Source: Macrostomum lignano (Eukaryota). Taken from it: a stretch of 64,000 nucleotides of DNA. Both the position numbers and the translations under genes were made by a program. Each line of letters begins with the position of its first letter. Position 1 is the first letter of the stretch. Below, piece after piece: positions 20,807 to 53,299 of this stretch. The stretch lies in NCBI GenBank assembly GCA_002269645.1, contig NIVC01001313.1, positions 62,001 to 126,000 on the forward strand, written 5' to 3'. Under the pieces are notes generated by a model. That model did no database searches. It was not told where the DNA came from and saw nothing but the letters and a program-made list of their open reading frames with translations.

Positions 20807-22516
20807 ATGGACGCCCAGCGCCTACCTCTGTCTGTGATAGTCAAAGAATCCGTGGCCAATACCACAGCTCACGCCATCGGCCGTGTGGCCCCTGCAAGTC
20901 GCGCCATTGTGCTGAGGATCTTCTGGCTTCTGGCTTTCTTGAGCTTCCTGGGCCTTCTGCTTAACACCTGCACCGTCTACATTCGACGCCTGAACAGTCC
21001 GAGCGTAAGGTCCGAGTTCCAAGCGGAAAAGGTTCCATTCGAGTTTCCCGATGTCTACTTTTGCAACAGTCTCCAAGCCGCTGGCTCGTTTATCTACCGA
21101 CTGAACAGGTCAGAGGCGGACCAGGTGAACATGCCGTTCTATGCTGCTCAGACTGCATTCGATGCCGCTCTCGGATCTCTGTATGCGTCGGAGAGTGAAA
21201 ACACAACACTGCGCGAACTTCGGCCAACAAGCTTGATCCAGTCTCAGCCCTACAGAACTCTGGCGGACATTGTGGGTCAGAGAAAGCTGCAGACATTCTA
21301 CGGAAACTACGGAATCTTCAGTGCAGGCTCAGATCGCAGTCTGAATTCCCCGATCGCGGTAGAGACGCTGTTCCACCCGAACCATCTGAAGTGCTTCAAG
21401 CTTGCCCTCACCGATGCTGAGTTATCTCGGATGCAGAATACGAACAACAGATTGCAGCTCGACCTGCTTCTCGATCCTTACTTCTTTGACTTCGATAAGC
21501 TTGGCCTGTTTTCAAACCATACAGACCGGCTTCCAACAATGTCTGTTGTCGTATCTGGTCATCAGATAACATTATATCCATTCGACTGGAACCTGGAAAA
21601 TCCGATTGGGTTCGATAAAGGCAGCGGAATGTATCTCTACCTGACGCCCAGAGGTCACTACCCGTCTCGATTCACCTCTAATGTGATCAGTCTGGGCCCC
21701 GGTCGAGCCTACGACGTCTCCATCGCAATGCAAGATGCCCAGATGACACCGGCGGACTTTCCCGGCCAGTGCGTTGAGAAACACAACGACTCAGTTCTGT
21801 TCTTGAACCCGTACAACGGTGCCGCAGATGCGTTCAGCTACAGCGAGGCTCACTGCTACTATTCGGAGATGGCGAGGGACAGACAGCAGAGGTACAACTG
21901 CAGCCCGACACCTGAGCCTACACCCTGGGAGTTTAGACATCTCCCTCTGTGCCTGAACCTCACAGCGGCTGAAACTGAAGAAGCAATTCATCGAAACATG
22001 AAGGCGTCCGTGAAAGCGCGTCTGGATGTCAATGGCGGCAACAGCACGTGGTACGACTTGTGCTCCGCGAAGCGACTGTGCAAGCGACGCACTTACTCCG
22101 TGACGTCATCTTATGGAATGTGGCCGAACCAAGCGAGTCTCGTTCGTCTGGTGGATAACGTCATTGGCTCTTTGCTGCAACGTGTTGATCGATCGCAGTT
22201 CAGATCACTCGAGACGGGTGTTAAAACACTGAACTTTTTGTATAGAAGCATTAATTTGGTCCCGTTTGAGACCGGAATAGGGCGCTACTTCCGGCGAGCA
22301 GCGGTAAGAGTCACGTTGAGAGCAAAAGCAAGTCGAAGCTCTCTGACAACATTCAGCCCTGACTATCGGCTTGGTCAGTTCATCGCGGACGTTGGCAGCG
22401 CACTTGGTTTGTATCTGGGATGTTCGCTGCTCACTGTGCTGGAGCTGTTTGAACTGTTGCACTACATGCTTATCCGTGCAGCATGCATTGGTCGTCAGCC
22501 CAAACGACTGCTATAG
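20807..22516 (+). CDS. DEG/ENaC (ASIC/degenerin family) channel subunit, intronless, copy 1 (569 aa)
   Basis: TM1 RIFWLLAFLSFLGLLL, FPDVYFCN, HLKCF, Cys-containing thumb, MWPN, and TM2 IADVGSALGLYLGCSLLTVLEL. Confidence 0.93.
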   Translation: MDAQRLPLSVIVKESVANTTAHAIGRVAPASRAIVLRIFWLLAFLSFLGLLLNTCTVYIRRLNSPSVRSEFQAEKVPFEFPDVYFCNSLQAAGSFIYRLNRSEADQVNMPFYAAQTAFDAALGSLYASESENTTLRELRPTSLIQSQPYRTLADIVGQRKLQTFYGNYGIFSAGSDRSLNSPIAVETLFHPNHLKCFKLALTDAELSRMQNTNNRLQLDLLLDPYFFDFDKLGLFSNHTDRLPTMSVVVSGHQITLYPFDWNLENPIGFDKGSGMYLYLTPRGHYPSRFTSNVISLGPGRAYDVSIAMQDAQMTPADFPGQCVEKHNDSVLFLNPYNGAADAFSYSEAHCYYSEMARDRQQRYNCSPTPEPTPWEFRHLPLCLNLTAAETEEAIHRNMKASVKARLDVNGGNSTWYDLCSAKRLCKRRTYSVTSSYGMWPNQASLVRLVDNVIGSLLQRVDRSQFRSLETGVKTLNFLYRSINLVPFETGIGRYFRRAAVRVTLRAKASRSSLTTFSPDYRLGQFIADVGSALGLYLGCSLLTVLELFELLHYMLIRAACIGRQPKRLL

Positions 22517-22875
22517 CGCTCTCAACAATAGCGGTTTGGCACTCTGCATGACGTAGTACAAACTGAACTTTTCTGGAACTGTGGAGTGGTTAGTTAGCTT
22601 TATGATGTCTGTTCCAACTGTATAAAGAAATTACTTTGAACATAATAAACACTCCATTATTCCTACATTCGGTATGACAAAGTACGAGACGCACTTCGCA
22701 AATAGCATTAGGTGTGTTGGTTTGTGACTGGTCTTGACTTGAGTCGATAACCAGTTTTAAATCCCTCTTCTCTGCCCGGCCTTGTCGCCTTGCGTACATT
22801 CTCTCCCTCCTTCTGTCCGCGCTGTGTGGGGGGGGGGGGTGCTTTGGCTCTGCGTGCGTGGGGTGGTGGCCTGGT

Positions 22876-26491: not shown

Positions 26492-28354
26492 ATGTCCGCG
26501 ATTTCGCAAGGCCGCGGCAGGACCAGTATAAGAGCGATTGTGCTCATTCAGTCATGGTACCGCCGGTACAAGGCCCGCCTAGAGGCAAGACGACGGGCAG
26601 AATGGAAAATTTACGAGAAAATCGAGTACGCCAGCGAACGGAACCGAATTCACTTGCAGAACTTCCTTGAAGATTTACTCGAGCTTGGCGCTGAACTTTC
26701 CGCCGGGGGAATTGACTGTAGCTTTGTTCAACGGCTCCAAGAGTTCAAAAGCGTGTCTATCCAGCCGAAGCAAGATAATATCAGTTTGGCAAGTTTTGAA
26801 GACTTCGATGTAGAAGATTCTTACTCGGGGCCTCGGTTGACCTTCCCTCTGAGCGCCACTCAGGTCCAAACTCTGATAGACCACTTCAGTCAGGGAGGAC
26901 GGCTGCACGCTCGCTACGTCATGCAGCTGCTGCATGAAGTCCGACTGGAACTCAAGACAAGGCCAAACATTTATCGACTCAGCACGAGCATCTCCAAGCA
27001 GGTGACGGTGGTCGGAGACCTACACGGGCAGCTGGAGGATCTGCTGCTCATTTTCTACAAGAACGGCCTGCCGGACGTCACCAACCCGTACGTGTTCAAC
27101 GGAGACATCGTCGACCGTGGCTCAAATTCGGTAGAGGTAGCGCTGCTGCTGTTCGCCTGTCAGCTGGTGTGGCCGACGGCGGTTTTTATCAACCGCGGCA
27201 ACCATGAAGATGCAACCATAAATATAAGGTATGGGTTCACAGACGAAGTTCAGACAAAGTACCAAGACACATTTCCGAAAATCATTGGATTATTTAATGA
27301 GGTGTTCTCGTGGCTTCCCATTGCCACGATGATTGACGGGAGCATCTTTGTAGTTCACGGTGGCATCTCCGACAGTGTGGACCTCGGGCTGCTGGATAAA
27401 CTTGACAGGCACAAGTACTATTCCCTGATTCCTGGTTCTGGAAATAAAGCGGTAAACAAAATGGAACAACAACAGATAATAGACGTTTTGTGGAGTGATC
27501 CTCAACCGGAGCTGGGCTGCCAATTCAACAACGAGCGTAACATCGGATGCTTCTTCGGGCCGGACATCACGGCAAATTTCTTGCAGCGGAACCGATTAAA
27601 TCTGCTAGTTCGCTCTCATCAGGTCCCGATTGATGGCTACTGTTATACTCACTGTGAATGTGTGCTGACGATCTTCTCCGCGTCCAACTACCAGTTCGAG
27701 GGCAGCAATCCCGGTGCCTACGTTAAGTTGGCCAGCAACGGAAAGCCCGAGATTGTGCAGTTCTGTCCCAGCAAGAAAAACCTTAAGCCGCTTGGTCGTC
27801 AAATTTTCTGCGCCGAAGACGCCGCTCTGCGCAGCCTTCGGGCGAAAATCGCCGCAAGCAAGACCGAGCTGGTGGCAACCTTCAGCAAGATGGATCCCCG
27901 CAAGACCGGCTGCGTCACCGTCGCCCAGTGGTGCAGCGCGATGGAGTCGGAGCTGAAGTTTGACCTGCCGTGGAGAATGCTGCGGCCTCATCTTGCGGAG
28001 TTGACAGCAGACAAACGCGTTATGTACATGACGACCTTCCAGAGAGCAACCCTGCAGAATAGTATGGAAAACACATTCTTCCCACTGCCAGATGCTTCAG
28101 TGATGGAGGCCGTTTACAAAAACAAGGAAGAGTTGGAGGCCATCTTCCGCATCATGGACCGCGACAACAGCGGCTACATCAGTCTGGACGAGTTCAAGGA
28201 GTGCTGCCGAGTTCTGGGCCGAGCCACCAAGCGTAACCTGCCTGAAGCCGAGATTGTCGACATGGCCAAAGCGATGGACCTCAACAAGGACGGCAGGATC
28301 GACTTCAACGAGTTTCTCGAGGCCTTTCGAATTGTCGAGTTTAAGAACAAATAA
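26492..28354 (+). CDS. PPEF: Serine/threonine phosphatase with EF-hands (PPEF/rdgC/PP7), intronless, copy 1 (620 aa)
   Basis: IQ motif IQSWYRRYKAR; GDLHG, GDIVDRG, RGNHE, HGG, RSHQ, SASNY; C-terminal EF-hands DRDNSGYISLDE and DLNKDGRIDFNE. Confidence 0.96.
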   Translation: MSAISQGRGRTSIRAIVLIQSWYRRYKARLEARRRAEWKIYEKIEYASERNRIHLQNFLEDLLELGAELSAGGIDCSFVQRLQEFKSVSIQPKQDNISLASFEDFDVEDSYSGPRLTFPLSATQVQTLIDHFSQGGRLHARYVMQLLHEVRLELKTRPNIYRLSTSISKQVTVVGDLHGQLEDLLLIFYKNGLPDVTNPYVFNGDIVDRGSNSVEVALLLFACQLVWPTAVFINRGNHEDATINIRYGFTDEVQTKYQDTFPKIIGLFNEVFSWLPIATMIDGSIFVVHGGISDSVDLGLLDKLDRHKYYSLIPGSGNKAVNKMEQQQIIDVLWSDPQPELGCQFNNERNIGCFFGPDITANFLQRNRLNLLVRSHQVPIDGYCYTHCECVLTIFSASNYQFEGSNPGAYVKLASNGKPEIVQFCPSKKNLKPLGRQIFCAEDAALRSLRAKIAASKTELVATFSKMDPRKTGCVTVAQWCSAMESELKFDLPWRMLRPHLAELTADKRVMYMTTFQRATLQNSMENTFFPLPDASVMEAVYKNKEELEAIFRIMDRDNSGYISLDEFKECCRVLGRATKRNLPEAEIVDMAKAMDLNKDGRIDFNEFLEAFRIVEFKNK

Positions 28355-29267
28355 AGCAAGATCGATTGCGCACTATAGTTCCATCTGGAGTGAAATGTTT
28401 TGTGAGAGCAATTGTCGAGAAAAAATTGAGCTTAACCGTTTAATTAGTGATATCAGTTCTGGAAAAACAATTCTGCGTCTGTTGTTTTATAGCGGGGGAA
28501 ACAATTTATTGCTTTTCAGTTAAAAATCTCAAATACAAGGCATTCCTGTGTTAATTAAATTGATCCTCTGATGCTGCAAAGCCTTGTCTACAGTACAGTA
28601 TAGAGATTGACGAACCCGCGTCCCGTACTTGTTCAACTCGTGTTAAATACTTCGCTCAGAAAAAGCAAACTGATTAGAAAGCAACCTGTAATATCCAGTG
28701 TCAATACTCCATGATCCTCATAGACCAGGGGCATTGCAGCAATCCAGGTATTCTTTAACCGATACCTGGGAGCCTAATAGATCGGATGCGAGATAATAAA
28801 GCTACTTGAACTATGTCTGAACATAAATGACTTTGAATTTGACGAAACGATTATCTTACAACTTAGAGGCACAGCCATGGGACTCGGATATACTCAGTAA
28901 CATTGAAAAGTCGCCACTCTATGCACAAGGAGACAAAGATACGAGAAAACTGATCAGGGGAGCTTTAATCCGTCCAACCCTCGCACACCGCTCCCCCACT
29001 TCATTCCGCAACTCAAGTCTGCCGCGGCGTAGCTGAGTTGCGTCACTCGCAAAGATTGGGAGACTTTACCTGCACTCTCAAAAGTGGCGACCACAGACGG
29101 AATCTTCAGTGATGGCGACTTTTCGATGATGCTGAGTAAATTCACCCAGCTGCCTGTCTCTTCACGAGCCTCTGGGAGGAAACTGCCCAGAGAACTTTTC
29201 TTTATAAGCCAAACATCTACTTCAGGTTCATAGATCACATATTTATTCACTAGGATCACCCGGCTGA

Positions 29268-29633
29268 AAGGCGGGCCGTAGCCCAGCGGTAGCGCAGCTG
29301 CTCTGGTGTGCCAGCGACCCAGGCTCGATTCCAAGTGCAGTCACATTAATTTGGGGCTGAATTGGAATCTCGGCTTGGCTCTGCTCGTGCAATTAACGGC
29401 CTTGAGAGCCAACCCCCCAAGGCGCAGTGAAGTGTACATGCCTAACGATAATATAAAATTAGGGCCGCTGTACACTCCTGTGTGTGTGGGCCTGCGTACG
29501 TATCCGCGCGCTTGTATGCCTGCTCAGGGGAGTCGGCGGAATGGGCAGTAATGCCTCTCGCCGGTTGTGTGTCTATGTCGCTTAAAGTGCGCCAGGGTGC
29601 ACACAACCCCCCTGCCTCTAATAAAAAAAAATA
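29268..29633 (+). mobile_element. tRNA-derived SINE, copy A
   Basis: GGGCCGTAGCCCAGCGGTAGCG A-box, GGCTCGATTCC B-box, A-rich tail; probable TSD acccggctga (29258-29267 and 29634-29643). Confidence 0.85.
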
Positions 29634-31640: not shown

Positions 31641-31853
31641 TTACTGCTGCTCTGGCTGCGGCTTCATCAGTTTCTCCTGCTGCAGCGGCAGGCCAAGCAT
31701 CAGGGGGTCGCGCAGCCGCCGCAGGTCGGACTGGACGTCGTTGATTCGCTGGCGAAGCTCGTTGTACTGTTCAACATTGAAGCTGCTCTTGTCGGCGTCT
31801 TTGTAGAATTTCTTCAAATACTCGCGGTCCCACACGGCCGGGAAAGTGTACTC
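31641..31853 (-). CDS. MCU: MCU exon 4
   Basis: [59 protein letters not shown]...stop. Confidence 0.94.
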   Translation of the reverse strand, partial: EYTFPAVWDREYLKKFYKDADKSSFNVEQYNELRQRINDVQSDLRRLRDPLMLGLPLQQEKLMKPQPEQQ

Positions 31854-34800
31854 CTGCGTTGGCGGGGCATTGGGGGGGGGGCGGTGGCAACTGAGAGTCC
31901 AAGAGTAGAAGCCTGTTTAGAAGCCTTATCATTATTAATGAGAATTTCCTTTATAAACGACATCCAGGTTTAAGGCACGCCCTTGGACAGGCATCCAGTA
32001 AGGGGATTTCCCAACTGAACTCAAGCATCGAGTACGGGTATTCACCATAAGCAGTCAGCAAGGGGATTCCCCACCGCACTTAAGAATTCAGCAAAAGGGA
32101 TTCCCGACCGCACACAAGCATCCAGCGAAAGGGAATCCTTACGGCACACAAGCATCCAGCATAAGGGATTCCCCACCGCACACAAGCATCCAGCAAAGGG
32201 GATTCCCAACCGCACACAAGCATCCAGCAAGGTGATTCCCTACCGCACTTAAGCATCAACAAGGGGATTCCCCACCGCACACAAGCATCCAGCAAAGGGG
32301 ATTCCCAACCGCACACAAGCATCCAGCAAGGTGATTCCCTACCGCACTTAAGCATCAACAAGGGGATTCCCCACCGCACACAAGCATCCAGCAAAGGGGA
32401 TTCCCAACCGCACACAAGCATCCAGCAAGGTGATTCCCTACCGCACTTAAGCATCAACAAGGGGATTCCCCACCGCACACAAGCATCCAGCAAGGTGATT
32501 CCCTACCGCACTTAAGCATCAAACAAGGTGATTCCCTACCGCACACACGCATCCAGCAAGGCGATTCCCCATCGCACTAAAGCATCCAGCAAAACGGATT
32601 CCCCACCGCACACACGCATCCAGCAAGGCGATTCCCTACCGCACTTAAGCATCCAGCAAGGGGATTCCCCACCGCACACAAGCATCTAGCAAGGGGATTC
32701 CCCATTGCACTTAAGCATCCAGCAAGGGGATTCCCCATTGCACTTAAGCATCCAGCAAGAAGATTCCCCATTGCACTTAAGCATCGAGCAAGGGGATTCT
32801 CCACCGCACTTAAGCATACAGCAAACGGATTCCCCACAGAACTTAAGCATACAGCGAGCTGAAAGTTAGAAAGTACATCGGGCTTAGCGAGAGAGATAAG
32901 GGCCTGGAACATCCGACTCAAGAATTAAGTGGCCGGCATACGTACCGGTATATCAAAGAGCAGAAGAGCAGAGTTCCGAGACGAGACGAATCCAGGGGAT
33001 CTAGCGATGTATAGTAATCCCTAGAGGGGAACGAAATAGATAGAGCCTACTCGTAAGAGGAAGACGAAGATGGAAGCAAGAGAATTTTTTTATTCCCAAA
33101 GAATCAATATCAAGAGAGCCGGACTGCATTATGGCCAGCGAAAAGGGAGTCTTTTACGAGAGTGCGGTGAGAGTTTTGAGATAACAGAGATGATGAATTA
33201 AGTACCGAGGGCAAGTACGCTCGAAGGAATAGGGTGGATAGGAGATCGAGCGATAGCTTAGGGGCTTTAGGGGCGATTCTCAGTGAGGTTTTAGGGGCGA
33301 TTCTCAGTGAGGTTTAGGGGGGATTCTCAGTGAGGTTTAGGGGGGATTCTCAGTGAGGTTTAGGGGCGATTCTCAGTGAGGTTTAGGGGGGATTATCAGT
33401 GAAATTTAGGGGCGATTCTCAGTGAGGTTTAGGGGGATTCTCAGTGAGGTTTAGGGGGATTATCAGTGAAGTTTAGGGGCGATTCTCAGTGAGGTTTAGG
33501 GGGGATTCTCAGTGAGGTTTAGGGGCGATTCTCAGTGAGGTTTAGGGGGGATTATCAGTGAAATTTAGGGGCGATTCTCAGTGAGGTTTAGGGGGATTCT
33601 CAGTGAGGTTTAGGGGGATTATCAGTGAAGTTTAGGGGCGATTCTCAGTGAGGTTTAGGGGGGATTCTCAGTGAGGTTTAGGGGGATTATCAGTGAGGTT
33701 TAGGGGCGATTCTCAGTGAGGTTTAGGGGCGATTCTCTGAGGTTTAGGGGCGATTATCAGTGAGGTTTAGGGGCGATTCTCAGTGAGGTTTAGGGGCGAT
33801 TCTCTGAGGTTTAGGGGCGATTATCAGTGAGGTTTAGGGGCGATTCTCAGTGAGGTTTAGGGGCGATTCTCTGAGGTTTAGGGGCGATTCACAGTGAGGT
33901 TTAGGGGGATTATCAATGAGGTTTAGGGGCGATTCTCAGTGAGGTTTTGGGGCGATTCTCAGTGAGATTTAGGGGCGATTCTCAGTGAAGTTTAGGGGGA
34001 TTCTCAGTGAGGTTTAGGGGCGATTCTCAGTGAGGTTTAGGGGCGCTTCTCAGTGAGGTTTAGGGGCGATTCTCAGTGAGGTTTTGGGGCGATTCTCAGT
34101 GAGATTTAGGGGCGATTCTCAGTGAAGTTTAGGGGGGATTCTCAGTGAGGTTTAGGGGCGATTCTCAGTGAGGTTTAGGGGCGATTCTCAGTGAGGTTTA
34201 GGGGCGATTCTCAGTGAGGTTTAGGGGGGATTCTCAGTGAGGTTAAAGGGCGATTCTCAGTGAGATTTAGGGGCGATTCTCAGTGAGGTTTAGCATTTGA
34301 TGGTAGCTTTGGACGATTCTCGTCCAAGTTTTTACAGAACAATTTTATCTTATAACGTAGCTTCTAAAGACTGCTATCCAAGCAATAAAATGATCCAATC
34401 AACAAAGACCTCTTACCTGCTTAGTGAGCACATAGTAGGCATAGCAGGCTATGGCCGTGCCGTAGCCAACAAAGTACGTGACCGGCTCCATAATATCCCA
34501 GCTGTATTCCCACCAGGTTAGCCGGGCAAGCACGCCGAACTGCACGCCCATGTAGGACAGGCTCAGCCAGGTGAGAATCCTGGTCCGACGGGAGGCCTTC
34601 TCAGCTAGTTGGCCGCGAATCTGAGGAGCGGACGTAGCGAAAAGTGAGGCAAATGTTTTTACAGAACAAAGCCGGACGATGAGCTATTTTTAGAATGTTA
34701 TAGAGAATGACGTCAGCCGCTGAGCTATTTTAAAATAGCATAGAGAATGACGTCAGCCGCTGAGCTATTTTTAAAATAGCATAGAGAATGACGTCAGCCG

Positions 34801-35842
34801 CTGAGCTATTTTTAGAATGTCATAGAGATGACGCCATACGCCGAGCTATTTTTAGAACGCCATAGCGAATGACGTCAGTCGTTAAGCTATTTCTAGAATA
34901 CCTTGGAAAATTACGTAATTCGTCGCTAAGCGCTTTTAAGAATGGCATGTAAGTCTGAAACCTAGGGAAAAATATTTTCTAATCTTTGGTCGCTTCGAGA
35001 CTTGTAAAACTCGCCAGTCTGCTATGCCTGCGTTTCGATTCGTCTAAGAGAAGGCAAACATTTAAGCTCAAATGTTTGCGTTCTCTGGCCCATCCATCCC
35101 ACGAGTCGCTGTGTACTTGTAGGCCTAAAAGCGAATTACGAGCAGGCGAGTTGATGACTGTCAAGAAACCGGAGCAACCAGTTAGTTTAACAGTAACCCC
35201 CTCATTTCCACAGTTGAAGTTGCGATTTTTTCGAGAAAGCACGAACGACTGATGCTGATTACTGCTGCTTGAGAAACGGAGAAGCAGATAGTCTGAGCTT
35301 GACAAGAGAATCTGACTCACTGCAACTGCAACTGGACTGAGCTGACTCGCTCTAATTTATGGATAATTGCGTGCAGCCTAAAGTAAGACAGACACAGCAG
35401 CTGGTTAAAGGACAGACAGTTGAAAGCTTTGCAAATAGACAATCACATATAGGGTTACTCATACAGAAAAGCCAAATCGACAGGCAGAGATACATACAGA
35501 TAGACTAACAGGCAGAGAGTCATCATTAAGTCAGAAAGACGGACGAAACTAAAGCACACAGAGACAGAAACAGACACACAATTATACGAACGTCAGTTTG
35601 GATGGACTGGACATTACCAGAGACGGACAGATAGACACACAGACCGTTCGTAAGTCTCAGTCCGTTCCCTCCCTCCCCCTCTCTCTCTCCCCTGGCTAAT
35701 AATAATATTTCATATAAGCTAGCTCAATAAAATTTGTGATTTTGCCTGTTTCTCTCTCTCTCTCTCATAGCTACGAGTTCGAGCTAACTATTGCTAGCTA
35801 CTCGAATATCTGTTGCCAGCAAAAACTGCGCACGACACACCC

Positions 35843-35897
<55 letters not shown>

Positions 35898-35904
35898 GAC
35901 AGAC

Positions 35905-35983
<79 letters not shown>

Positions 35984-41900: not shown

Positions 41901-43875
41901 ATAACGCAGTATGTTCAACGGCCCCATCATAAAATACAAAATATGAATAAAGAAAACAGTTGCTGTATCCAGCAGTACAACAGACTAATTAATTTTACTA
42001 TTTTTGAAGAAAAAAGTTTGTGAGTAGCAACACTCTCAAAGTGCTTCCAGTCCAGTCGCGCCCTGCAACAGTCATCGATCAAATATGTCAGCCACAGCGA
42101 GACCGCCGTTTTTTTTAAAAAGATAAGCCAAGCCTCAGTCCCTTCAGAGCTACAGCGAATATAGGCAAGAAAAAGCGGCGAAAAAAGGCGAGAAGAAATC
42201 GGGTTAGCCAAGAGCAAACTAGACGGAGACAGGTCCAGCAAGACACTGCTCAAGCGAGTCCAATAATAATAAAGTCAATAAATTGGACTCTTCGGATCAA
42301 AGGCTTGAGGATTTAGCAGGACGGAATTGAGACTTTGTTAATCTCATTAAATAAGAGTGCACCGGTACTGCCCGAGTTCGTGTCATTTCGCCTCTTTTTT
42401 TTTACTCCTTCCATGCGGTGGCCAATCGATCCAGATAGATTGACGGCTGGCTACTACTATACTGTGTTTGGTTACCCGACAAAAAAGCAGATAGCAGTTT
42501 TACCAAACAAGCGGAGCTATAGGCATATAGACATGTACATGTGCCGTGGGTGATTCTAAATAGAGTTTTAGGAAGGACTCATTTTATCATAAGCATTACA
42601 ACAGATGCCATCGTGACTGAATTATATTTTATAAATATTATTCCCATGCTTCAAAATGCATGCTAATCATCGTTTTTATGGTGAACTTGGGGTAAAGAAT
42701 AAAATGCGTAAAAATTGTTTGTGGTGGGGAGTCAGTTCGTAGCTGATGGCGAATCAAAGATCGCTGATAGGGAATCAGAGGCACTGATGGGGAATCAGAG
42801 GCACTGATGGGGAATCAGAGGCACTGATGGGGAATCAGAGGCACTGATGGGGAATCAGAGGCACTGATGGGGAATCAAAGAGGCAGCTGATGGGGAGTCA
42901 AAGAGACAGCTGATGAGGAATCAAAGAGACAGCTGATGAGGAATCAAAGAGACAGCTGATGAGGAATCAAAGACAGCTGATGAGGAATCAAAGAGAGCTG
43001 ATGGGGAATCAAAGAGACGGCTGATGGGGAATCAAATAGACAGCTGATGAGGAATCAAAGAGACAGCTGATGAGGAATCAAAGAGAGCTGATGAGGAATC
43101 AAAGAGAGCTGATGGGGAATCAAAGAAACGGCTGATGGGGAATCAAAGACAGCTGATGAGGAATCCAAGACAGCTGATGAGGAATCAAAGAGAGCTGATG
43201 GGGAATCAAAGAGACGGCTGATGGGGAATCAAAGAGAGTTGATGAGGAATCAAAGAGACAGCTGATGAGGAATCAAAGAGAGCTGATGAGGAATCAAAGA
43301 GACAGCTGATGAGGAATCAAAGAGAGCTGATGAGGAATCAAAGAGAGCTGATAGGGAATCAAAGAAACGGCTGATGGGGAATCAAAGACAGCTGATGAGG
43401 AATCAAAGAGACAGCTGATGAGGAATCAAAGAGAGCTGATGGGGAATCAAAGAGACGGCTGATGGGGAATCAAAGAGAGCTGGTGGGGAATCAAAGAGAC
43501 GGCTGATGGGGAATCTGTTTGGAAATAATGTGTCACTGACGAAGAAGAGCCCATGCGAAATGTTAAGGGTTAAGTGCTGTAATACAGTTGAACAGGGGAC
43601 TCACCAGACGTGTAGAAAATAATCTGCTCAACGCCCCGATCCTCATTGCGAATGCTGGCAGTCAGATCGCTAACCGTATTGGTGAGCGGCTTCATGGTGA
43701 ACTGGCACGCCTTGCCCCGGCTAGGCAGGGGAATGCGGAAGCGGGGCAGGCCGTCTTGGTAAACCACACTAGCGGAAGTGGCTACTGAGCACAGGCTGCG
43801 ATGACAGACAGCAATACCTACCGGTCGCCAGGCAACAGTTGCTAGGCGAAAACTAAATTGACTGCCAGCCAGCAT
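31641..43875 (-). CDS. MCU: Mitochondrial calcium uniporter, 4 exons (43875-43605, 37650-37385, 34620-34417, 31853-31641), 317 aa
   Basis: All junctions are GT-AG and in phase (954 nt). Contains YQDGLP..LPSR..CQFT, a coiled coil, [18 protein letters not shown] pore motif and DLRRLRDPL; basic/hydroxylated N-terminus fits a mitochondrial presequence. Alternative start at 43911. Confidence 0.95.
32000..32840. repeat. 33-bp minisatellite (gcatccagcaaggggattccccaccgcacacaa/cttaa)n
   Basis: Tandem copies with an internal GGGGATTCCCC palindrome; no unique spacers. Confidence 0.93.
33275..34295. repeat. 23-bp minisatellite (gattctcagtgaggtttaggggc)n
   Basis: About 44 tandem copies in MCU intron 3. 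Confidence 0.96.
34417..34620 (-). CDS. MCU: MCU exon 3 (TM1-pore-TM2)
   Basis: [68 protein letters not shown]. Confidence 0.97.
34680..34920. repeat. ~41-bp tandem repeat carrying TGACGTCA
   Basis: gagctatttttagaatgttatagagaaTGACGTCAgccgct, 5-6 copies. Confidence 0.9.
35842..36088. repeat. (GACA)n microsatellite
   Basis: Long agac repeat with occasional agagac interruptions. Confidence 0.98.
36762..37272. repeat. 22-bp G-rich minisatellite (gggggagctgaaatgggtgaca)n
   Basis: About 23 copies in MCU intron 2. Confidence 0.96.
37385..37650 (-). CDS. MCU: MCU exon 2
   Basis: [19 protein letters not shown]...[35 protein letters not shown]. Confidence 0.93.
37665..38350. repeat. 20-bp minisatellite (gagaggattatttgggattt)n
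   Basis: Tandem copies abutting the exon 2 acceptor region of MCU. Confidence 0.95.
39415..40016. repeat. 24-bp minisatellite (cagtatagctctggcgctctttta)n
   Basis: About 25 copies. Confidence 0.96.
40780..41037. mobile_element. hAT (Charlie-type)-like MITE with an internal GA-rich tract
   Basis: TIR CAGGGGTCGGCAAA...TTTGGCGACCCCTG; cctacag duplicated on both sides (7 bp). Confidence 0.8.
41700..41865. repeat. ~48-bp tandem repeat
   Basis: ccacaccccataatccccattgtgtatttcaattgcactgctgctgtc, 3-4 copies. Confidence 0.85.
42740..43515. repeat. 21-23-bp minisatellite (gctgatgaggaatcaaagaga[ca])n
   Basis: Tandem copies near the MCU exon 1 donor. Confidence 0.95.
43605..43875 (-). CDS. MCU: MCU exon 1
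   Basis: [17 protein letters not shown]...[27 protein letters not shown]...[13 protein letters not shown]; GTGAGT donor. Confidence 0.92.
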
Positions 43876-45323
43876 GTTGATAAGTAGGACTGGGGTTGAC
43901 GTGTGGCGCATGCGTGTTATTTAAACAGGCTTACTTTTGCTTACATAATTCATGTTCTACAATAATAAAGCATGTTTATTAACAATATGTTTAAAATATC
44001 AAATAATGCAACACTTTTAGTTTAAGAGATTTTACTAATTGCAGTATTAACATTAACAGGCAAACATAAGACATATATGTATCTAATATGTATCAATGAA
44101 AAGCACATTTTAAACAGATTTATCTAATAAATTAGGGATATAAGCACTTGGCAGCTATATTATCCCAAGATCAGAGGGTCACCGTTTTTGTAATTCCACT
44201 GCCCTGAGACAATTTTCTTGCCTTGGGATTATATTACTACTCTATATTAATTGTTGTCTTGTGGCAATTCTTGCTTTTGAGTGGCCTTAACTCTAAAAAA
44301 TGAACAAGCCTATAGAATACTGTGGATAGTTAATTTAACATGAGAACAACTTTATTAGCTTATATCAGAAGAACAAATTTGTAAGCTCACAAGCAAGAGA
44401 TAAGTTGCTCTCCTTTGGCCTTCCCTGACCCTCTATTTATACTATAGTTTTGAAGTAATTTTAAACAAAACAAATATTTTCTAAAACAATGCTGTTTAAA
44501 CAAAGTTAATGGAATTATGAATGTGCAGTTTTCTAAGAAAGTAAATTGTAACAAAATATAAAGTATTAAGTGTGCATAGAAATATTATTATTTATTATAA
44601 TGTACTACCTCAAAAGCCAATATAACAATTATTTTGTTATTCTTAACTAATTATTTGTTTTAGATATACTTCAAATTTTGATAAAATTTATACTGTTTTT
44701 ACTTTTTTAGTAAACTAGCTTTGTTGCTCCTGGTATTTACCTTTAATTCAATCAGCCAGCCATACATTTATTACTTAGTAAAGCCAAGTTTCTAATCTTT
44801 TCTTTCTATGGTAAATTTATACTGCAGAAGTGAAGTCCCTAAAAATACTAATAAATTCAAAATCTCACTTGACTTACTACCCTAGGCCTACTTATAAAAA
44901 TGTATCTACATAAAGTATATTTATGTATTATATCTTTATATAATATAGGAATGGCATAAATACAGAATGCTGATACATATATACTGTATCTTAGTATAAT
45001 AATAAAAAACAAACTTTTTATTACTTCAAATCTAGGCACTCATTATTTACATGGTAGGTACGTATAATAGTGCCAGTGTTATTTACATGGTAACTAAAAT
45101 AAAAACTTGTTTTATATACTGTGTAGCACTTATAGCTATGGTCTAGTAACATTTGACTACCAATCTATCCTTTTTAAGGCAAATCAGTTGCATTCTTGTT
45201 TGTTTGTTTTGAAACACCCTTTGTACCTTGCATTATAAATAGTACAAGCACTACAAGTTAATAAAAAATGCTAGGCTATAAACATATAAATCACAGCTAA
45301 ATTCTATCTACCAACTTTTTTCA

Positions 45324-45676
45324 TTAGAGGCAGGGGGGTTATGTGCACCCTGGTGCACTTTAAGCGACATAGGCATACAACCGGCAAAAGGCATTGCTGC
45401 CCATTCCACCGACTCCCCAAGTAGGCAAACAAACGCGTGGATACATACGTAGGCACACACTCACATAGGAGTGTACAGCAGCCCTAACTTTATATTATCA
45501 TTAGGCATATACATTTCATTGCACCTTAGGGGGTTGGCTTTCAAGGCTGTTAATTGAATGAGCAGAGCCAAGCCAAGATTCCAATTCAGCCCCAAATTAA
45601 TGTGACTGCACTTGGAATCGAGCCTAGGTTACTGGCACACTAGAGCCTGCGCTAGACTGCTAGGCTACGGCTCCCC
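45324..45676 (-). mobile_element. tRNA-derived SINE, copy B (full length)
   Basis: Reverse complement of copies A and D from ggggagccgtagcctagcagtctagcgc to cccctgcctctaa. Confidence 0.88.
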
Positions 45677-48487: not shown

Positions 48488-50188
48488 TCAATTCGACGCC
48501 GGCCTGCAGCAGACAGCAAAAAGAAGCACATTGTGCAGCAGCTCGAACAGCTCCAACACGGTGAGCAGCGAACATCCCAGATACAAACCAAGTGCGCTGC
48601 CAACGTCCGCGATGAACTGACCAAGCCGATAGTCAAGGCTGAATGTTGTCAGAGAGCTTCGACTTGCTTCTGCTCTCAACGTGACTCTCACCGCTGCTCG
48701 CCGGAAGTAGCGCAACGCTCCGTCTTCGAAGTCAATAAGACGCACTGATTTATCGATAAACTGCAATGTTCCAACACCCGTCTCGAGTGATCTGAACTGC
48801 GATCGATCAACACGTTGCAGCAAAGAGCCAATGACGTTATCCACCAGACGAACGAGACTCGCTTGGTTCGGCCACATTCCATAAGATGACGTCACGGAGT
48901 AAGTGCGTCGCTTGCACAGTCGCTTCGCGGAGCACAAGTCGTACCACGTGCTGTTGCCGCCATTGACATCCAGACGCGCCTTTACGGACGCCTTCATGTT
49001 TCGATGAATTTCTTCTTCAGTTTCAGCCGCTGTGAGGTTCAGGCACAGAGGGAGATGTCTAAACTCCCAGGGTGTAGGCTCAGGTGTCGGGCTGCAGTTG
49101 TACCTCTGCTGTCTGTCCCTCGTCATCTCCGAATAGTAGCAGTGAGCCTCGCTGTAGCTGAACGCATCTGCGGCGCCGTTGTACGGGTTCAAGAACAGAA
49201 CTGGGTCGTCGTGTTTCTCAACGCACTGGCCGGGAAAGTCCGCCGGTGTCATCTGGGCATCTTGCATTGCGATGGAGACGTCGTAGGCTCGACCGGGACC
49301 CAGGTTGATCACATTAGAGGTGAATCGAGACGGGTAGTGACCTCTGGGCGTCAGGTAGAGATACATTCCACTGCCTTTATCGAACCCAATCGGATTCTCC
49401 AGGTTCCAGTCGAATGGATATAATGTTATCTGTTGACCAGATACGAAAACAGACATTGTTGGAAGCCGGTCTGTATGGTTTGAAAACAGGCCAAGCTTAT
49501 CGAAGTCAAAGAAGTAAGGATCGAGAAGCAGGTCGAGCTGCAATCTGTTGTTCGTATTCTGCATCCGAGATAACTCAGCATCGGTGAGGGCAAGCTTGAA
49601 GCACTTCAGATGGTTCGGGTGGAACAGCGTCTCTACCGCGATCGGAGAATTCAGACTGCGATCTGAGCCTGCACTGAAGATTCCGTAGTTTCCGTAGAAT
49701 GTCTGCAGTTTTCTCTGACCCACAATGTCCGCCAGAGTTCTGTAGGGCAGAGACTGGATCAAGCTTGTTGGCCGAAGTTCGCGCAGTGTTGTGTTTTCAC
49801 TCTCCGACGCATTCAGAGATCCGAGAGCGGCATCGAATGCAGTCTGAGCAGCATAGAACGGCATGTTCACCTGGTCCGCCTCTGACCTGTTCAGTCGGTA
49901 GATAAACGAGCCAGCGGCTTGGAGACTGTTGCAAAAGTAGACATCGGGAAACTCGAATGGAACCTTTTCCGCTTGGAACTCGGAATTTACGCTCGGACTG
50001 TTCAGGCGTCGAATGTAGACGGTGCAGGTGTTAAGCAGAAGGCCCAGGAAGCTCAAGAAAGCCAGAAGCCAGAAGATCCTCAACACAATGGCGCGACTTG
50101 TAGGGGCCACACGGCCGATGGCGTGAGCTGTGGTATTGGCCACGGATTCTTTGACTATCACGGACAGAGGTAGGCGCTGGGCGTCCAT
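48488..50188 (-). CDS. DEG/ENaC channel subunit, intronless, copy 2 (566 aa)
   Basis: Near-identical paralogue of 20807-22516 with the same motifs. Confidence 0.93.
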   Translation of the reverse strand: MDAQRLPLSVIVKESVANTTAHAIGRVAPTSRAIVLRIFWLLAFLSFLGLLLNTCTVYIRRLNSPSVNSEFQAEKVPFEFPDVYFCNSLQAAGSFIYRLNRSEADQVNMPFYAAQTAFDAALGSLNASESENTTLRELRPTSLIQSLPYRTLADIVGQRKLQTFYGNYGIFSAGSDRSLNSPIAVETLFHPNHLKCFKLALTDAELSRMQNTNNRLQLDLLLDPYFFDFDKLGLFSNHTDRLPTMSVFVSGQQITLYPFDWNLENPIGFDKGSGMYLYLTPRGHYPSRFTSNVINLGPGRAYDVSIAMQDAQMTPADFPGQCVEKHDDPVLFLNPYNGAADAFSYSEAHCYYSEMTRDRQQRYNCSPTPEPTPWEFRHLPLCLNLTAAETEEEIHRNMKASVKARLDVNGGNSTWYDLCSAKRLCKRRTYSVTSSYGMWPNQASLVRLVDNVIGSLLQRVDRSQFRSLETGVGTLQFIDKSVRLIDFEDGALRYFRRAAVRVTLRAEASRSSLTTFSLDYRLGQFIADVGSALGLYLGCSLLTVLELFELLHNVLLFAVCCRPASN

Positions 50189-51427
50189 TCCTTGGTAGTT
50201 TCTGGGGGAGACTTGGCGACTGACTGCTGTGCAGTTATACTCAACTCAACAGAGAGGCAATCAAGGAAATGAATCGATCTGTACCGGCTCAATCATTCCA
50301 ATCAGAAAGCTCCAAGCGCACCTATTTACTTTGGTAACAAATGGAAGTTTCTGACCAATATAAAGCATATATGACTTCCACCTCTCGTTGCTTAGGGCAA
50401 CTCAGCTTTTGGCCCTTCCTATTAACCAAGCAGTTCAGCGACAGTTATAACTGACGAGAATTGCCTTGCATTGTTTGTGCAGCTCAGTTAAACAGAGCGT
50501 GTATTGGTTAGCTAATGCTTTTACAATGTGTATTGTTTGATGAGTGGCCTAGGCTAATAACCTGCCGTGCTAAGCAACTCAAACCTGTCCCAACTGCAGC
50601 AGACAGCTAGGATCCTATGCTTAGCAAAATAATTTCAATTCTGTTTGTTTAGGGGCCAATACCAAATTTTCAATTATGGAACAGGCATTTTAACCATGAT
50701 TTTTAGTTTCCTTCCTTCGCATTTCATTTGTTTGATTTGAGAAACAGCTGAAGTTTTATGTGATTAGACGTTTGTGCTTCCTCCATCTTCCTAGTTTTTG
50801 CTGCCAATAGATGCTTGGGATAAAATCTAATTTTTTATGGACAGGACAGGAAATGCTGGTTAGGGGAAATGGCTATCTTTATAGTGCATTTGGTTCAGGA
50901 AACTGGCCCTTACATGGCTCCATAGAAGAAAACTCTAGAATAAGATTAGTAAACCGAAAATTCAAATTGGCTAATTGTTACTTGCGGAGTTCACTAACGC
51001 TTACACCTCACCATTGAGCATTAGTGAACAGTCATGAATGAGCCCTCATTGTGCAATCACGGAGATGCACTACATTGATTTTTTGCAGTTTTCAAACTTA
51101 GCTTAAAATTCACAGAACGGATTGTCAACCAACGCAATCTCGAACCCCTCAGCCCATTGCAATAAGCGATGCGTTGCTTAATACACGCATATTCTTGTAT
51201 GCAGAGGAAAAGCTACCCTTTCAATCCAACCAATCTGCAATCTGCAAATATCAAACAACCATAAAATACAACGAAAATTTCTTGGTAAATACTTCAGAGG
51301 CGATGAATGCACCGACACTTGTTATCTCAAACCGAAATCGCACACAGGGACACATGGGTAGCAACATCGTTTATGAAACTTAAATTGCGGATTATAGAAA
51401 GTCAAACTTTAACAACTGCACCATGAC

Positions 51428-53299
51428 TTAATTGCTCTTAAACTCGACAATTCGAAAGGCCTCGAGAAACTCGTTGAAGTCGATCCTGCCGTCCTTGTTG
51501 AGGTCCATCGCTTTGGCCATGTCGACAATCTCGGCTTCAGGCAGGTTACGCTTGGTGGCTCGGCCCAGAACTCGGCAGCACTCCTTGAACTCGTCCAGAC
51601 TGATGTAGCCGCTGTTGTCGCGGTCCATGATGCGGAAAATGGTCTCCAGCTCTTCCTTGTTTTTGTAAACGGCTTCCATCACTGAAAAGTCTGGCAACGG
51701 GAAGAATGTGTTTTCCATACTGTTCTGCAGGGTTGCTCTCTGGAAGGTCGTCATGTACATGACACGTTTGTTCGCAGTAAGCTCTGTCAGATGAGGCCGC
51801 AACATTCTCCACGGCAGATTGAACTTCAGCACCGACTCCATCGCGCTGCACCACTGGGCGACGGTGACGCAGCCGGTCTTGCGGGAATCCATTTTGCTGA
51901 AGGCTGCCACCAGCTCGGTCTTACTTGCGGCGATTTTCGCCCGAAGGCTGCGCAGAGCGGCGTCTTCGGCGCAGAAAATTTGACGACCGAGAGGCTTAAT
52001 GTTTTTCTTGTTTGGGCAGAACCGCACAATCTCCGGCTTTCCGTTGCTGTCGAACTTGACGTAGGCACCGGGATTGCTGCCCTCGAACTGGTAGTTGGAC
52101 GCGGAGAAGATCGTCAGCACACATTCGCAGTGAGTATAACAGTATCCATCAATTGGATCCTGGTGAGAGCGAACTAGCAGCTTGAATCGGTTCCGCTGCA
52201 AGAAGTTTGCCGTGATGTCCGGTCCAAAGAGGCAGCCTTTGCCGCGGCTGCTGATTTGGGATCCGTGCTGCCCGTGAGGATCGCTCCACAACAAGTCTCC
52301 CACTTGTTCCCATTCCATTTTATCAACATTTCCATTTTTTGAGTTTGAAAAAAGCGAATAGTACTTGTGCCTGTCAAGTTTATCTAGCAGCTCGAGGTCC
52401 AGGTTTTCCGAGATGCCACCGTGAACTACAAAGATGCTCTCATCAATAATTGTGGCAAGCGGAAGCCATGAAAACACTTCGTTAAATAGATCGACGACTT
52501 TGTGTGATAGTAAATTGTACTTTTTGTGAATCTCTTTGTTGAAGCCGTATTTCTGGTTAATAATGGGGTCTTCATGGTTGCCGCGGTTGATAAAAACCGC
52601 CGTCGGCCACACCAGCTGACAGGCGAACAGCAGCAGCGCTACCTCTACCGAATTTGAGCCACGGTCGACGATGTCTCCGTTGAACACGTACGGGTTGGTG
52701 ACGTCCGGCAGGCCGTTCTTGTAGAAAATGAGCAGCAGATCCTCCAGCTGCCCGTGCAGGTCTCCGACCACCGTCACCTGCTTGGAGATGCTCGTGCTGA
52801 GTCGATAAATGTTTGGCCTTGTCTTGAGTTCCAGTCGGACTTCATGCAGCAGCTGCATGACGTAGCGAGCGTGCAGCCGTCCTCCCTGACTGAAGTGGTC
52901 TATCAGAGTTTGGACCTGAGTGGCGCTCAGAGGGAAGGTCAACCGAGGCCCCGAGTAGGACGTTTCGACGGCGATATCTTCAAAATTTGTCCAACTAGGT
53001 AGTTCCCGCTCCTGCCGGTTGGCGCTCGACTCAATCTCTTGAAGACGCTGAGCAAAACTGCTATCAGCTCCTCCTCCGGACAGTTCGGAGCCAACGTTGA
53101 GTACGTCATTGAAAAAGTTTTGCAAATTAATGCGATTATTCTCACTGGAGTACTCGATGTTCTGGTGGATTCTCCAGGCTACGCGTTTTCTGGCCTCAAG
53201 GCGGGCCCTGTATCGGCGGTACCATTTCTGTATCGACACAATGGCCTTAATCTTGACTTCGCCACCACTGCTCATTAATTTTGTAGTAGCTGTAGCCAT
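51428..53299 (-). CDS. PPEF: PPEF/rdgC phosphatase, intronless, copy 2 (~623 aa from ATG 53299; frame open to 53452)
   Basis: IQKWYRRYRAR IQ motif, all PPP metal-binding motifs and EF-hands; paralogue of 26492-28354. Confidence 0.95.
   Translation of the reverse strand: MATATTKLMSSGGEVKIKAIVSIQKWYRRYRARLEARKRVAWRIHQNIEYSSENNRINLQNFFNDVLNVGSELSGGGADSSFAQRLQEIESSANRQERELPSWTNFEDIAVETSYSGPRLTFPLSATQVQTLIDHFSQGGRLHARYVMQLLHEVRLELKTRPNIYRLSTSISKQVTVVGDLHGQLEDLLLIFYKNGLPDVTNPYVFNGDIVDRGSNSVEVALLLFACQLVWPTAVFINRGNHEDPIINQKYGFNKEIHKKYNLLSHKVVDLFNEVFSWLPLATIIDESIFVVHGGISENLDLELLDKLDRHKYYSLFSNSKNGNVDKMEWEQVGDLLWSDPHGQHGSQISSRGKGCLFGPDITANFLQRNRFKLLVRSHQDPIDGYCYTHCECVLTIFSASNYQFEGSNPGAYVKFDSNGKPEIVRFCPNKKNIKPLGRQIFCAEDAALRSLRAKIAASKTELVAAFSKMDSRKTGCVTVAQWCSAMESVLKFNLPWRMLRPHLTELTANKRVMYMTTFQRATLQNSMENTFFPLPDFSVMEAVYKNKEELETIFRIMDRDNSGYISLDEFKECCRVLGRATKRNLPEAEIVDMAKAMDLNKDGRIDFNEFLEAFRIVEFKSN

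Follow-up and report, generated by a model that had tools for sequence, protein, structure and literature searches.

The question raised by this locus of Macrostomum lignano is how two copies of a gene pair, an intronless DEG/ENaC-like channel gene and an intronless PPEF phosphatase gene, came to lie in permuted order on both sides of a spliced gene. In the window (the whole stretch of DNA analyzed, 64 000 nt of contig NIVC01001313, assembly Mlig_3_7) we saw the order ENaC1(+), PPEF1(+), MCU(−), ENaC2(−), PPEF2(−), with four uninterrupted ORFs around the multi-exon gene of the mitochondrial calcium uniporter (Table 1). The initial annotation had described exactly such a duplicated, permuted pair, and all four ORFs were found uninterrupted where it had placed them; the neighbours WSC, MCU and MMD, which it took to be spliced, are all multi-exon. 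It was also right in stating that a simple inverted duplication does not fit, as the plus strand reads ENaC then PPEF, while the minus strand reads PPEF then ENaC. The 323 aa of MCU are spread over ∼12.3 kb, so introns must be present; its annotated product has a precomputed PF04678 match and shares 64% identity with a trematode MCU. The MCU introns are full of 20–33-bp satellites.

Table 1. Features of the locus (coordinates within the window)
Feature	Position	Strand	Description
WSC-domain gene	18951..19796	−	151 aa, spliced; left neighbour, collinear in three of three assembly copies
Leader 5′ of ENaC1 ATG	20754..20806	+	53 nt, 96% identical to 50189-50239 (−) 5′ of ENaC2
ENaC1	20807..22516	+	Uninterrupted 569-aa ORF, divergent DEG/ENaC family; no GenBank annotation
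Putative ENaC conversion tract, codons 1–465	20807..22201	+	∼98% nt identical to 50188-48794 (−)
Apparently unconverted ENaC patch	22202..22336	+	Two 30-codon windows across it with nt identities of 90% and 72% to ENaC2
PPEF1 (Mlig032497)	26492..28354	+	Uninterrupted 620-aa ORF; IQ motif, PPP core, two EF-hands; annotated in GenBank
Putative PPEF conversion tract	26852..27211	+	99.4% nt identical to 52927-52568 (−); alignment columns 181–300
Putative older or partial PPEF conversion region	27566..28351	+	93.5% nt identical to 52216-51431 (−)
tRNA-derived SINE	29267..29631	+	Poly-A tail and ∼10 nt target-site duplication
MCU (mitochondrial calcium uniporter)	31641..43893	−	323 aa, multi-exon
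MCU coding pieces	43573-43893; within 36743-37738; 34402-34683; 31644-31916	−	WDIMEP pore motif in 34402-34683
ENaC2	48488..50188	−	Uninterrupted 566-aa ORF; no GenBank annotation; intact in three of three assembly copies
PPEF2 (Mlig002821)	51428..53299	−	Uninterrupted 623-aa ORF
HlyIII/PAQR gene (MMD of the initial annotation)	59018..61625	−	248 aa, spliced; right neighbour

One could ask whether the second pair exists at all or stems from chimeric joining or from a haplotype left uncollapsed, since Mlig_3_7 is known to be redundant (∼700 Mb versus ∼500 Mb measured). We consider the probability of such an artefact negligible: the pairs have no common flanking sequence, they have diverged by 14% (PPEF) and 4% (ENaC), and contigs 458 and 42 carry both pairs each. 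The block WSC–ENaC1–PPEF1–MCU–ENaC2–PPEF2–PAQR is present in three collinear assembly copies, on three contigs; the copies are 96–99% identical, intergenic DNA included, and are set apart by indels of SINEs and satellites. On contig 458 the pairs have the order and orientation seen in the window and are ∼27 kb apart; on contig 42 they have the same neighbour genes and are ∼30 kb apart. The copies of the first pair on these two contigs are 99.7% identical over 7.8 kb, and the two contigs may be not fully independent assemblies. As the arrangement was assembled separately on two further contigs, misassembly and chance can both be dismissed; a haplotype or assembly duplication, which the initial annotation had named as fatal to its own reading, is excluded by this recurrence.

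About 70% of Mlig_3_7 consists of three-copy blocks with ∼2% SNP divergence, and sub-genomes S, L1 and L2 have been described for M. lignano (PMC10733133). The three assembly copies are these sub-genomes, the known neopolyploid state of the species. We saw no unusual difference from the published blocks: the locus lies on three contigs, its copies show 1–4% SNP divergence, large repeat indels and early pseudogenization among redundant copies, and it is thus a typical block.

The two PPEF proteins are 82% identical in amino acids (86% in nucleotides). Both have IQ, PPP5, Metallophos and EF-hand domains in Pfam (E ∼1e-28 for Metallophos, ∼1e-17 for EF-hand_7), the PPP catalytic motifs GDLHG, GDIVDRG, GNHE and HGG, IQ motifs IQSWYR / IQKWYR, and two canonical 12-residue EF-hand loops, DRDNSGYISLDE and DLNKDGRIDFNE. 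The Pfam IQ match of PPEF1 (E = 2.8e-4, 20.8 bits) is slightly over the cut-off of 20.3 bits; that of PPEF2 (E = 8.6e-3, 16.2 bits) is under it. PPEF1 is an exact match to an annotated M. lignano protein, and the 578-aa GenBank model of PPEF2 equals our ORF for aa 1–504, after which a 17-nt gap shifts the frame and the EF-hands are lost. All best matches outside Macrostomum are PPEF/pef-1/rdgC proteins (42–48% aa identity); neighbor joining placed the M. lignano PPEFs in a single clade (100/100), which groups with Schistosoma PPEF among the sampled animal PPEFs. The N-terminal IQ motif, the PPP motifs and the two C-terminal EF-hand loops are those of the PPEF/rdgC/PEF-1 family, from which the M. 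lignano genes differ in their intron-free coding sequence (CDS) and in a Macrostomum-specific expansion, in which each sub-genome has five or more loci, counting both examined and inferred ones. Between assembly copies, the pN/pS of PPEF is 0.05–0.14. Both PPEFs are probably active Ca2+/calmodulin-regulated phosphatases.

The ENaC proteins are closer to each other (95% aa, 96% nt identity) and much farther from anything else. Both match PF00858 (ASC) over its full length (E = 3.5e-32 and 5.2e-32; model positions 3–455 of 455), and two hydrophobic segments, 27–59 and 529–551, flank a large ectodomain with 8 Cys and 7 N-glycosylation sequons, as expected for two-TM channels. Of the motifs conserved in the DEG/ENaC/ASIC family (HG before TM1, FPxVTxCN after TM1, a GxS filter in TM2), the ORFs show FPDVYFCN after TM1, GCS at the selectivity-filter position and LELFE in TM2, and HA at residues 22–23 in place of the HG gating motif. 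The ORFs are very divergent: alignment to solved ASIC and FaNaC structures is confined to TM1 and TM2, and the nearest relatives are all M. lignano proteins, at most 30% identical, plus one 55% partial sequence. The ASIC1 ectodomain has ∼14 Cys, unlike the 8 found here. The pN/pS values between assembly copies, 0.26–0.40, indicate coding constraint despite the absent annotation; the ORFs are predicted to be constrained channel subunits, probably expressed at a low level or in few cells.

Homology between the pairs is confined almost entirely to the genes, the observation that had drawn attention to the CDS edges in the initial annotation and that was confirmed here. The ENaC match extends from 53 nt upstream of the ATG to 45 nt short of the stop codon, and the PPEF match from 37 nt past the ATG to the stop codon. 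When the flanks were searched sensitively, no pair-to-pair homology came up beyond the 53-nt ENaC leader, and no relic ENaC or PPEF copies were found elsewhere in the window. In the ENaC1 leader, a CAG located 16 nt ahead of the ATG comes after a pyrimidine tract, the two together being possibly a splice acceptor.

Within the genes, identity is a mosaic. Third codon positions of ENaC differ at 12 of 465 sites in codons 1–465 and at 20 of 61 in the divergent patches (Fisher p = 7e-13); the second of these divergent stretches is formed by the last ∼20 codons (61.5% nt identity in codons 541–569). In PPEF, 2 of 120 third positions differ in alignment columns 181–300 versus 106 of 235 in the flanking segments (Fisher p = 5e-21), and the segments bordering this tract are only 56–73% identical. 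Third-position identity of the unconverted PPEF1/PPEF2 segments is 53–56%, and comparison with the paralogs on another contig (L002) gave 42–52%; thus synonymous sites in the background of each pair are saturated, and the two PPEFs are about as diverged there as from those paralogs. Whole-gene dS values are unequal, 0.087 for ENaC and 0.375 for PPEF, as would result from differing coverage by conversion and not from a single recent duplication.

We consider it quite likely that old duplicates overwritten by interlocus gene conversion, with the permuted order produced by later rearrangement, explain the locus, the conversion being read from sequence patterns of one assembly. An ancient local duplication would have doubled both a lineage-specific, divergent DEG/ENaC gene and a PPEF gene, probably together or stepwise in the neighbourhood. 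Repeated ectopic conversion between inverted paralogs ∼25 kb apart would then have created the tracts of 98–99.4% identity, which stop at the limits of similarity, on or close to the CDS edges. In this view homology is limited to the CDS because an old duplication was later overlain by conversion, and the pairs have the look of recent duplicates while their flanks share nothing. Recombination between inverted paralogs may also cause inversion, a plausible step to the permuted order, though the exact path to it is no longer recoverable. Conversion evidently went on after the three assembly copies diverged: in the first 790 nt no fixed difference separates ENaC1 from ENaC2 across the six assembled copies, and site patterns at 12 or more ENaC positions (011110 six times, 011100 four times, 011010 twice) are incongruent with both the paralog and the sub-genome splits.

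The initial annotation suggested another possible origin, two retrogenes re-duplicated via a circular intermediate or an inverted tandem array. As in processed retrogenes, the four CDSs are uninterrupted in a genome with ∼5 introns per gene (average 4.9), and the retroposition machinery has been active recently, since the assembly copies differ in the presence of a SINE. This very SINE (29267–29631; absent from its site in the two other copies) can be used as an internal control, showing the marks that recent retroposition leaves in the M. lignano genome: it carries both poly-A and a target-site duplication, whereas remnants of either were found at none of the four genes. A retrocopy is expected to carry the 3′UTR, yet the ENaC match stops before the stop codon and the PPEF match at it; upstream, ENaC homology crosses the pyrimidine-tract/AG element, and mosaic identity with synonymous-saturated segments is not what recent copying of RNA should leave. 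Nor are the missing introns peculiar to these pairs. Every M. lignano PPEF examined (the survey covered those other than P0006 and P0007) has an intron-free CDS, save Mlig022204 with a single intron after codon 3, and paralogs with dS >1 share the property; of two ENaC paralogs, the 30%-identical one has 2 introns, the 26%-identical one none. Intronlessness is therefore older than the duplication of the pair, and far older than the similarity between the two pairs; an intron-free CDS, being common to the examined PPEFs and at least one distant ENaC paralog, is uninformative about how the pair duplicated. The search for an intron-containing parent gene, proposed along with the retrogenes, came back empty among the sampled M. 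lignano PPEFs. Recent RNA-mediated retroposition of the second pair is thus very improbable, and any retroposition must have been ancient and unrelated to the duplication of the pair; the lack of poly-A, target-site duplication, UTR-spanning homology and, among the sampled paralogs, an intron-bearing parent sets these genes apart from processed retrogenes.

The mosaic could also be read in the opposite sense, with the divergent patches being derived: a fairly recent DNA-level duplication followed by patchy replacement from unseen paralogs or by local hypermutation. Possible donors are many among M. lignano PPEF and ENaC paralogs, and the divergent ENaC patches are short (∼65 codons) and could come from an unseen third paralog. 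However, the divergent segments make up ∼40% of PPEF and none of the sampled paralogs comes closer to them (identity to L002a/b there is 59–66%). A recent DNA duplication should moreover have left homology in the flanks, which do not align between the pairs, while the sub-genome copies, at dS ∼0.03, still align through all intergenic DNA. We therefore see very little chance for this explanation, comparable to that for retroposition.

A different matter is whether ENaC and PPEF were kept twice because they work together, as a co-adapted and co-regulated sensory or sperm module of channel and phosphatase with selected linkage. The two genes lie next to each other at two places in the window, an arrangement that each of the three sub-genome copies has kept, PPEF2 and ENaC2 are on the same strand 1.24 kb apart (polycistronic precursors are known in M. 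lignano), and both families show coding constraint; still, adjacency of both copies is a trivial outcome of local segmental duplication. No such adjacency was seen when six loci of more distant ENaC or PPEF paralogs were sampled. There was no ENaC match within 10 kb of three distant PPEF loci (the L002 tandem pair and Mlig022204 in L010–L012), and the neighbourhoods of two distant ENaC paralogs (L004 and L005) had no PPEF. Redundant copies have begun to decay: ENaC1 is a pseudogene in two assembly copies, with two nonsense mutations, next to an intact PPEF1 under strong constraint, and PPEF2 has one nonsense mutation in one of the three copies. Furthermore, both PPEFs but no ENaC copy appear in the transcript-based GenBank annotation, which argues against tight co-expression, and a literature search gave no report tying the two families together in Macrostomum. 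The retained module of the initial annotation is thus very unlikely, and nothing found here links ENaC to PPEF functionally.

Textbook cases of interlocus conversion include primate globin and opsin duplicates, the palindrome arms of the Y chromosome and CYP21A2/CYP21A1P. The M. lignano pairs share with them sharp-edged tracts of near-identity within old duplicates, homogenized synonymous sites, identity that stops with homology, site patterns in conflict with a single tree, and paralogs within tens of kb. They differ in that two unrelated adjoining genes appear to have been converted in parallel, in the permuted gene order and, unlike the palindrome arms, in flanks without any homology. In a neopolyploid with three sub-genomes, exchange between paralogs and exchange between homeologs overlap.

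The process proposed, conversion over old duplicates, is an ordinary evolutionary one and gives no evidence of a new functional module. One could speculate, at long odds, that the ENaC-like channel and PPEF are jointly active in the same sensory, ciliated or sperm cells, their adjacency being kept by selection for co-regulation, possibly with a polycistronic PPEF2–ENaC2 transcript, beside MCU in a ‘calcium-handling’ neighbourhood. Were this so, gene conversion would maintain two interchangeable copies of the ENaC–PPEF module.

The four open reading frames (ORFs), two coding for DEG/ENaC channels and two for PPEF phosphatases, were found uninterrupted in the ORF list and translations, exactly where the initial annotation had placed them. 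Transcription runs from ENaC to PPEF on the left and from PPEF to ENaC on the right, therefore the gene order is permuted, as proposed; the neighbouring WSC, MCU and HlyIII/PAQR genes are indeed spliced, unlike the ENaC and PPEF ORFs. Window coordinates (see table) equal coordinates of the GenBank record (NIVC01001313.1, GCA_002269645.1) minus 62000.

Coordinates of genes, matches, repeats and locus copies (in the window unless a locus is named)
Feature	Coordinates	Strand	Remarks
ENaC1	20807-22516	+	uninterrupted ORF, 569 aa
PPEF1	26492-28354	+	uninterrupted ORF, 620 aa
ENaC2	48488-50188	-	uninterrupted ORF, 566 aa
PPEF2	51428-53299	-	uninterrupted ORF, 623 aa
MCU	31641-43893	-	323 aa, several exons, WDIMEP pore motif; between pairs
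WSC gene	18951-19796	-	spliced; flanks block
HlyIII/PAQR gene	59018-61625	-	spliced; flanks block
ENaC match	20754-22471 / 50239-48524		96.2% identical
PPEF match	26529-28354 / 53249-51428		86.3% identical
ENaC leader	20754-20806 / 50189-50239		5' of ATG
PPEF columns 181-300	26852-27211 / 52927-52568		99.4% identical
Unconverted segments	PPEF1 26498-26851, 27212-27565; ENaC1 22202-22336
tRNA-derived SINE, ~355 bp	29267-29631; 45316-45671 (-); 60253-60475; 62077-62417; L003 12130-12493		tRNA-like head, poly-A tail, ~10-nt target-site duplication
Satellites upstream of locus	4097-7416; 8810-13077; 14196-17191		three arrays, 3-4 kb
Satellites in MCU introns	32049-32855; 33263-34293; 36760-37272; 37700-38348; 39412-40007; 42741-43515
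14/29-bp satellite	22884-23377; 25024-25387		two inverted arrays between ENaC1 and PPEF1
Copy on NIVC01001313 (window)	L001 (pair-1 side); L009 (pair-2 side)
Copy on NIVC01000458	L007 (pair-1 side); L003 (pair-2 side)		ENaC ORFs: L007 6506-8215, L003 13464-15164
Copy on NIVC01000042	L006 (pair-1 side); L008 (pair-2 side)		ENaC ORFs: L006 6506-8215, L008 12671-14371; PPEF2: L008 9560-11431
PPEF tandem, NIVC01000493	L002 10001-11896; 15523-17583		intron-free
Mlig022204, NIVC01000247	L010 10001-17279

Both ENaC ORFs matched the whole of the Pfam model PF00858 (ASC) with E about 4e-32; a motif check and an ASIC alignment showed two transmembrane segments, FPDVYFCN and GCS/LELFE, with HA instead of HG. 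In both PPEFs Pfam detected IQ, PPP5, Metallophos and EF-hand domains, and GDLHG, GDIVDRG, GNHE, HGG and two canonical EF-hand loops were present (motif check). A homolog search with the MCU exons as query matched MCUs of other organisms only; Rfam and tRNA scans across the window gave no matches.

Self-BLAST between the window halves returned the ENaC and PPEF matches only, besides the dispersed ~355-bp element and satellites. PPEF similarity stops at the stop codon and ENaC similarity 45 nt short of it; when 1.2-1.5 kb of each flank was searched with higher sensitivity, just the 53-nt leader 5' of the ENaC ATG emerged, so that homology does end at or near the CDS edges. This leader ends with CTCCCCC(CC)AG, 16 nt 5' of the ATG; by its sequence, it resembles an acceptor for cis-splicing or SL trans-splicing.

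Within the coding sequences, identity was distributed as a mosaic. PPEF columns 181-300 carry 2 third-position differences in 120, compared with 106 in 235 in the adjoining segments (Fisher p = 5e-21), which are 56-73% identical; over the C-terminal 260 codons identity is 93.5%. In ENaC, identity is about 98% over codons 1-465 and drops in two divergent stretches, at codons ~466-510 (72% at the nucleotide level) and over the last ~20 codons (61.5%; 30-codon windows, p = 7e-13). Both pairs being mosaic, the confinement of similarity to the CDS is best explained by gene conversion. Conversion also appears, from site patterns, to have gone on after the assembly copies separated: among six ENaC copies there was no fixed ENaC1/ENaC2 difference in the first 790 nt, and at least 12 ENaC sites had patterns compatible neither with a split by paralog nor with one by sub-genome. 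Whole-gene dS (0.087 for ENaC, 0.375 for PPEF) reflects the converted share of each gene, not duplication age. At third positions of the unconverted PPEF segments, PPEF1 and PPEF2 were 53-56% identical to each other versus 42-52% to the two paralogs in the NIVC01000493 tandem (L002); the underlying duplication is therefore ancient.

The initial annotation had suggested that the pair might be re-duplicated retrogenes and called for a search for intron-containing parents. An intron-free CDS is unusual in M. lignano, since genes of this species have on average 4.9 introns (PMC5730564). However, neither a poly-A remnant nor a target-site duplication was present at any of the four genes, while the SINE at 29267-29631 carries both, its insertion site being empty in the other assembly copies, and served as an internal positive control for retroposition. 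ENaC similarity runs 53 nt 5' of the ATG through a pyrimidine tract plus CAG. Together with the mosaic identity and an intron-free CDS that is older, these observations speak against retrocopying. The two L002 PPEFs have uninterrupted CDS at dS >1 to the window copies, and Mlig022204, from the other M. lignano PPEF clade, has its only intron after codon 3, aa 4-726 all being encoded by one exon; therefore intronlessness predates this duplication, and no intron-bearing parent was found among the PPEFs sampled. Mlig022204 had been considered as a ‘multi-exon parent’ for its gene span of 7-12 kb, and was dropped when tblastn put aa 4-726 in one exon. Its ~5-kb intron 5' of a single large exon is in keeping with intron loss biased towards the 3' end, or with an old retrogene that acquired a 5' exon. 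One of two sampled ENaC paralogs was intron-free, the other having two introns. All M. lignano PPEFs were monophyletic in a neighbour-joining tree (100/100), PPEF1, PPEF2 and the L002 pair making one sub-clade (76/100). The L002 tandem genes are 61-67% identical in amino acids to the window copies; dS between the two tandem genes is about 0.94, and no ENaC gene is nearby.

Another reading, that the second pair is an assembly artefact, was tested by contigs NIVC01000458 and NIVC01000042, found via proteins that cluster with PPEF1 and PPEF2. Gene order on both is that of the window, and their identity with it is 96-99% across genes and intergenic DNA alike. With the locus on three contigs an artefact is excluded, and the order shared by all three means that the arrangement predates the polyploid copies. 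Three copies agree with what has been published on this genome: about 70% of the Mlig_3_7 assembly consists of 3-copy blocks (S, L1 and L2 sub-genomes) that have large indels and diverge by ~2% in SNPs (PMC10733133). The three locus copies are distinguished by SINE and satellite indels; as SINE presence or absence differs among them, this element was active at some time after the whole-genome duplication. Over 7.8 kb spanning ENaC1 and PPEF1 (L006 4393-12194, L007 4401-12194), contigs 42 and 458 share 99.74% identity; beyond it they are ~96% identical, pair 2 being ~1.2% diverged; either sub-genome sequence exchange or an assembly mosaic could account for their near-identity at pair 1. The segment 22877-25680 (2.8 kb) has ~0.6 kb in its place in the other two copies. 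A satellite related to the 14/29-bp one is also present at 60.6-61.3 kb of the window; the upstream and MCU-intron satellites are unrelated sequences, nearly all with a 20-24-bp unit (one of 33 bp).

Several routes to the permuted order were considered. No path by tandem or inverted duplication plus a single inversion gives E>P> ... <E<P. Tandem duplication with two inversions, the second via recombination between the then-inverted PPEF copies, would work; two separate inverted single-gene duplications or excision from a longer array would work as well. A test for a decayed tandem array found no relic ENaC or PPEF fragments, nor other duplicated genes between the flanks, elsewhere in the window. 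Because the flanks have diverged beyond recognition, the data favour none of the three routes.

Could the two genes form a retained channel-plus-phosphatase module, sensory or sperm? The idea is kept alive by PPEF2 and ENaC2 lying 1.24 kb apart on one strand, polycistronic precursors being known in M. lignano (PMC5730564). On the other hand, DNA up to 10 kb from the L002 PPEF pair and from Mlig022204 contained no ENaC-family match, and no PPEF was seen near the ENaC paralogs at two distant loci (L004, L005); ENaC1 decays beside a strongly constrained PPEF1, and the transcript-based annotation includes the PPEFs and omits the ENaC copies. A literature search on the gene IDs, ENaC or PPEF in Macrostomum found nothing specific. 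With no positive evidence for it, we consider a functional module highly improbable; double ENaC-PPEF adjacency is an expected product of any local segmental duplication.

The decay is seen as nonsense substitutions: R159* (AGA>TGA) and S463* (TCG>TAG) in ENaC1 on contigs 42 and 458, and G76* (GGA>TGA) in PPEF2 on contig 42. In redundant sub-genome copies such mutations look like early pseudogenization after whole-genome duplication. Between assembly copies pN/pS was 0.05-0.14 for PPEF and 0.26-0.40 for ENaC, the latter indicating that the ENaC ORFs are now or were recently under coding constraint. All six ENaC ORF copies lack an annotation in GenBank; they probably represent a lineage-specific DEG/ENaC gene that is weakly expressed and was therefore missed. 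A word-indexed homolog search with ENaC1 gave one match, and exhaustive HMMER search was used instead, which yielded only 163 relatives at E <= 0.001. Of the ten best hits that were inspected, all nine named clusters were from M. lignano (25-30% identical); the best hit was a 55%-identical partial sequence from a sequencing run, and another examined hit came from ENA. By these comparisons, ENaC1 and ENaC2 belong to a lineage-specific, fast-evolving DEG/ENaC clade.

The protein collection contained a sequence identical to the PPEF1 product; exact-product look-ups for ENaC1, ENaC2 and PPEF2 gave no record, PPEF2 being annotated as a different, frame-shifted model. This model (ending at 51546; also used on contig 458) has 578 aa, identical to the ORF for aa 1-504, after which the frame is changed via a 17-nt gap and both EF-hands are lost. 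Since the ORF in the genome runs unbroken for 623 aa and is under strong constraint, the annotated PPEF2 is probably a gene-model error.

The locus is best explained by a local duplication of ancient date, gene conversion that made the copies evolve in concert, triplication in the neopolyploid genome and the onset of pseudogenization. Local duplication would have produced two ENaC and two PPEF copies; interlocus conversion would then have overwritten CDS stretches, leaving similarity in the CDS only; triplication would have given three collinear locus copies, the redundant ones beginning to turn into pseudogenes. All these processes are already known, and no new kind of system is involved. For M. 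lignano annotation, the points are an unannotated constrained DEG/ENaC gene, a PPEF2 model without EF-hands and early pseudogenization. More generally, the case shows that, through interlocus gene conversion, an ancient duplication can pass for a recent ‘CDS-only’ copy and mimic a retrogene; dating of duplicates and calling of retrocopies must allow for conversion in genomes that are polyploid and rich in repeats, like that of M. lignano.
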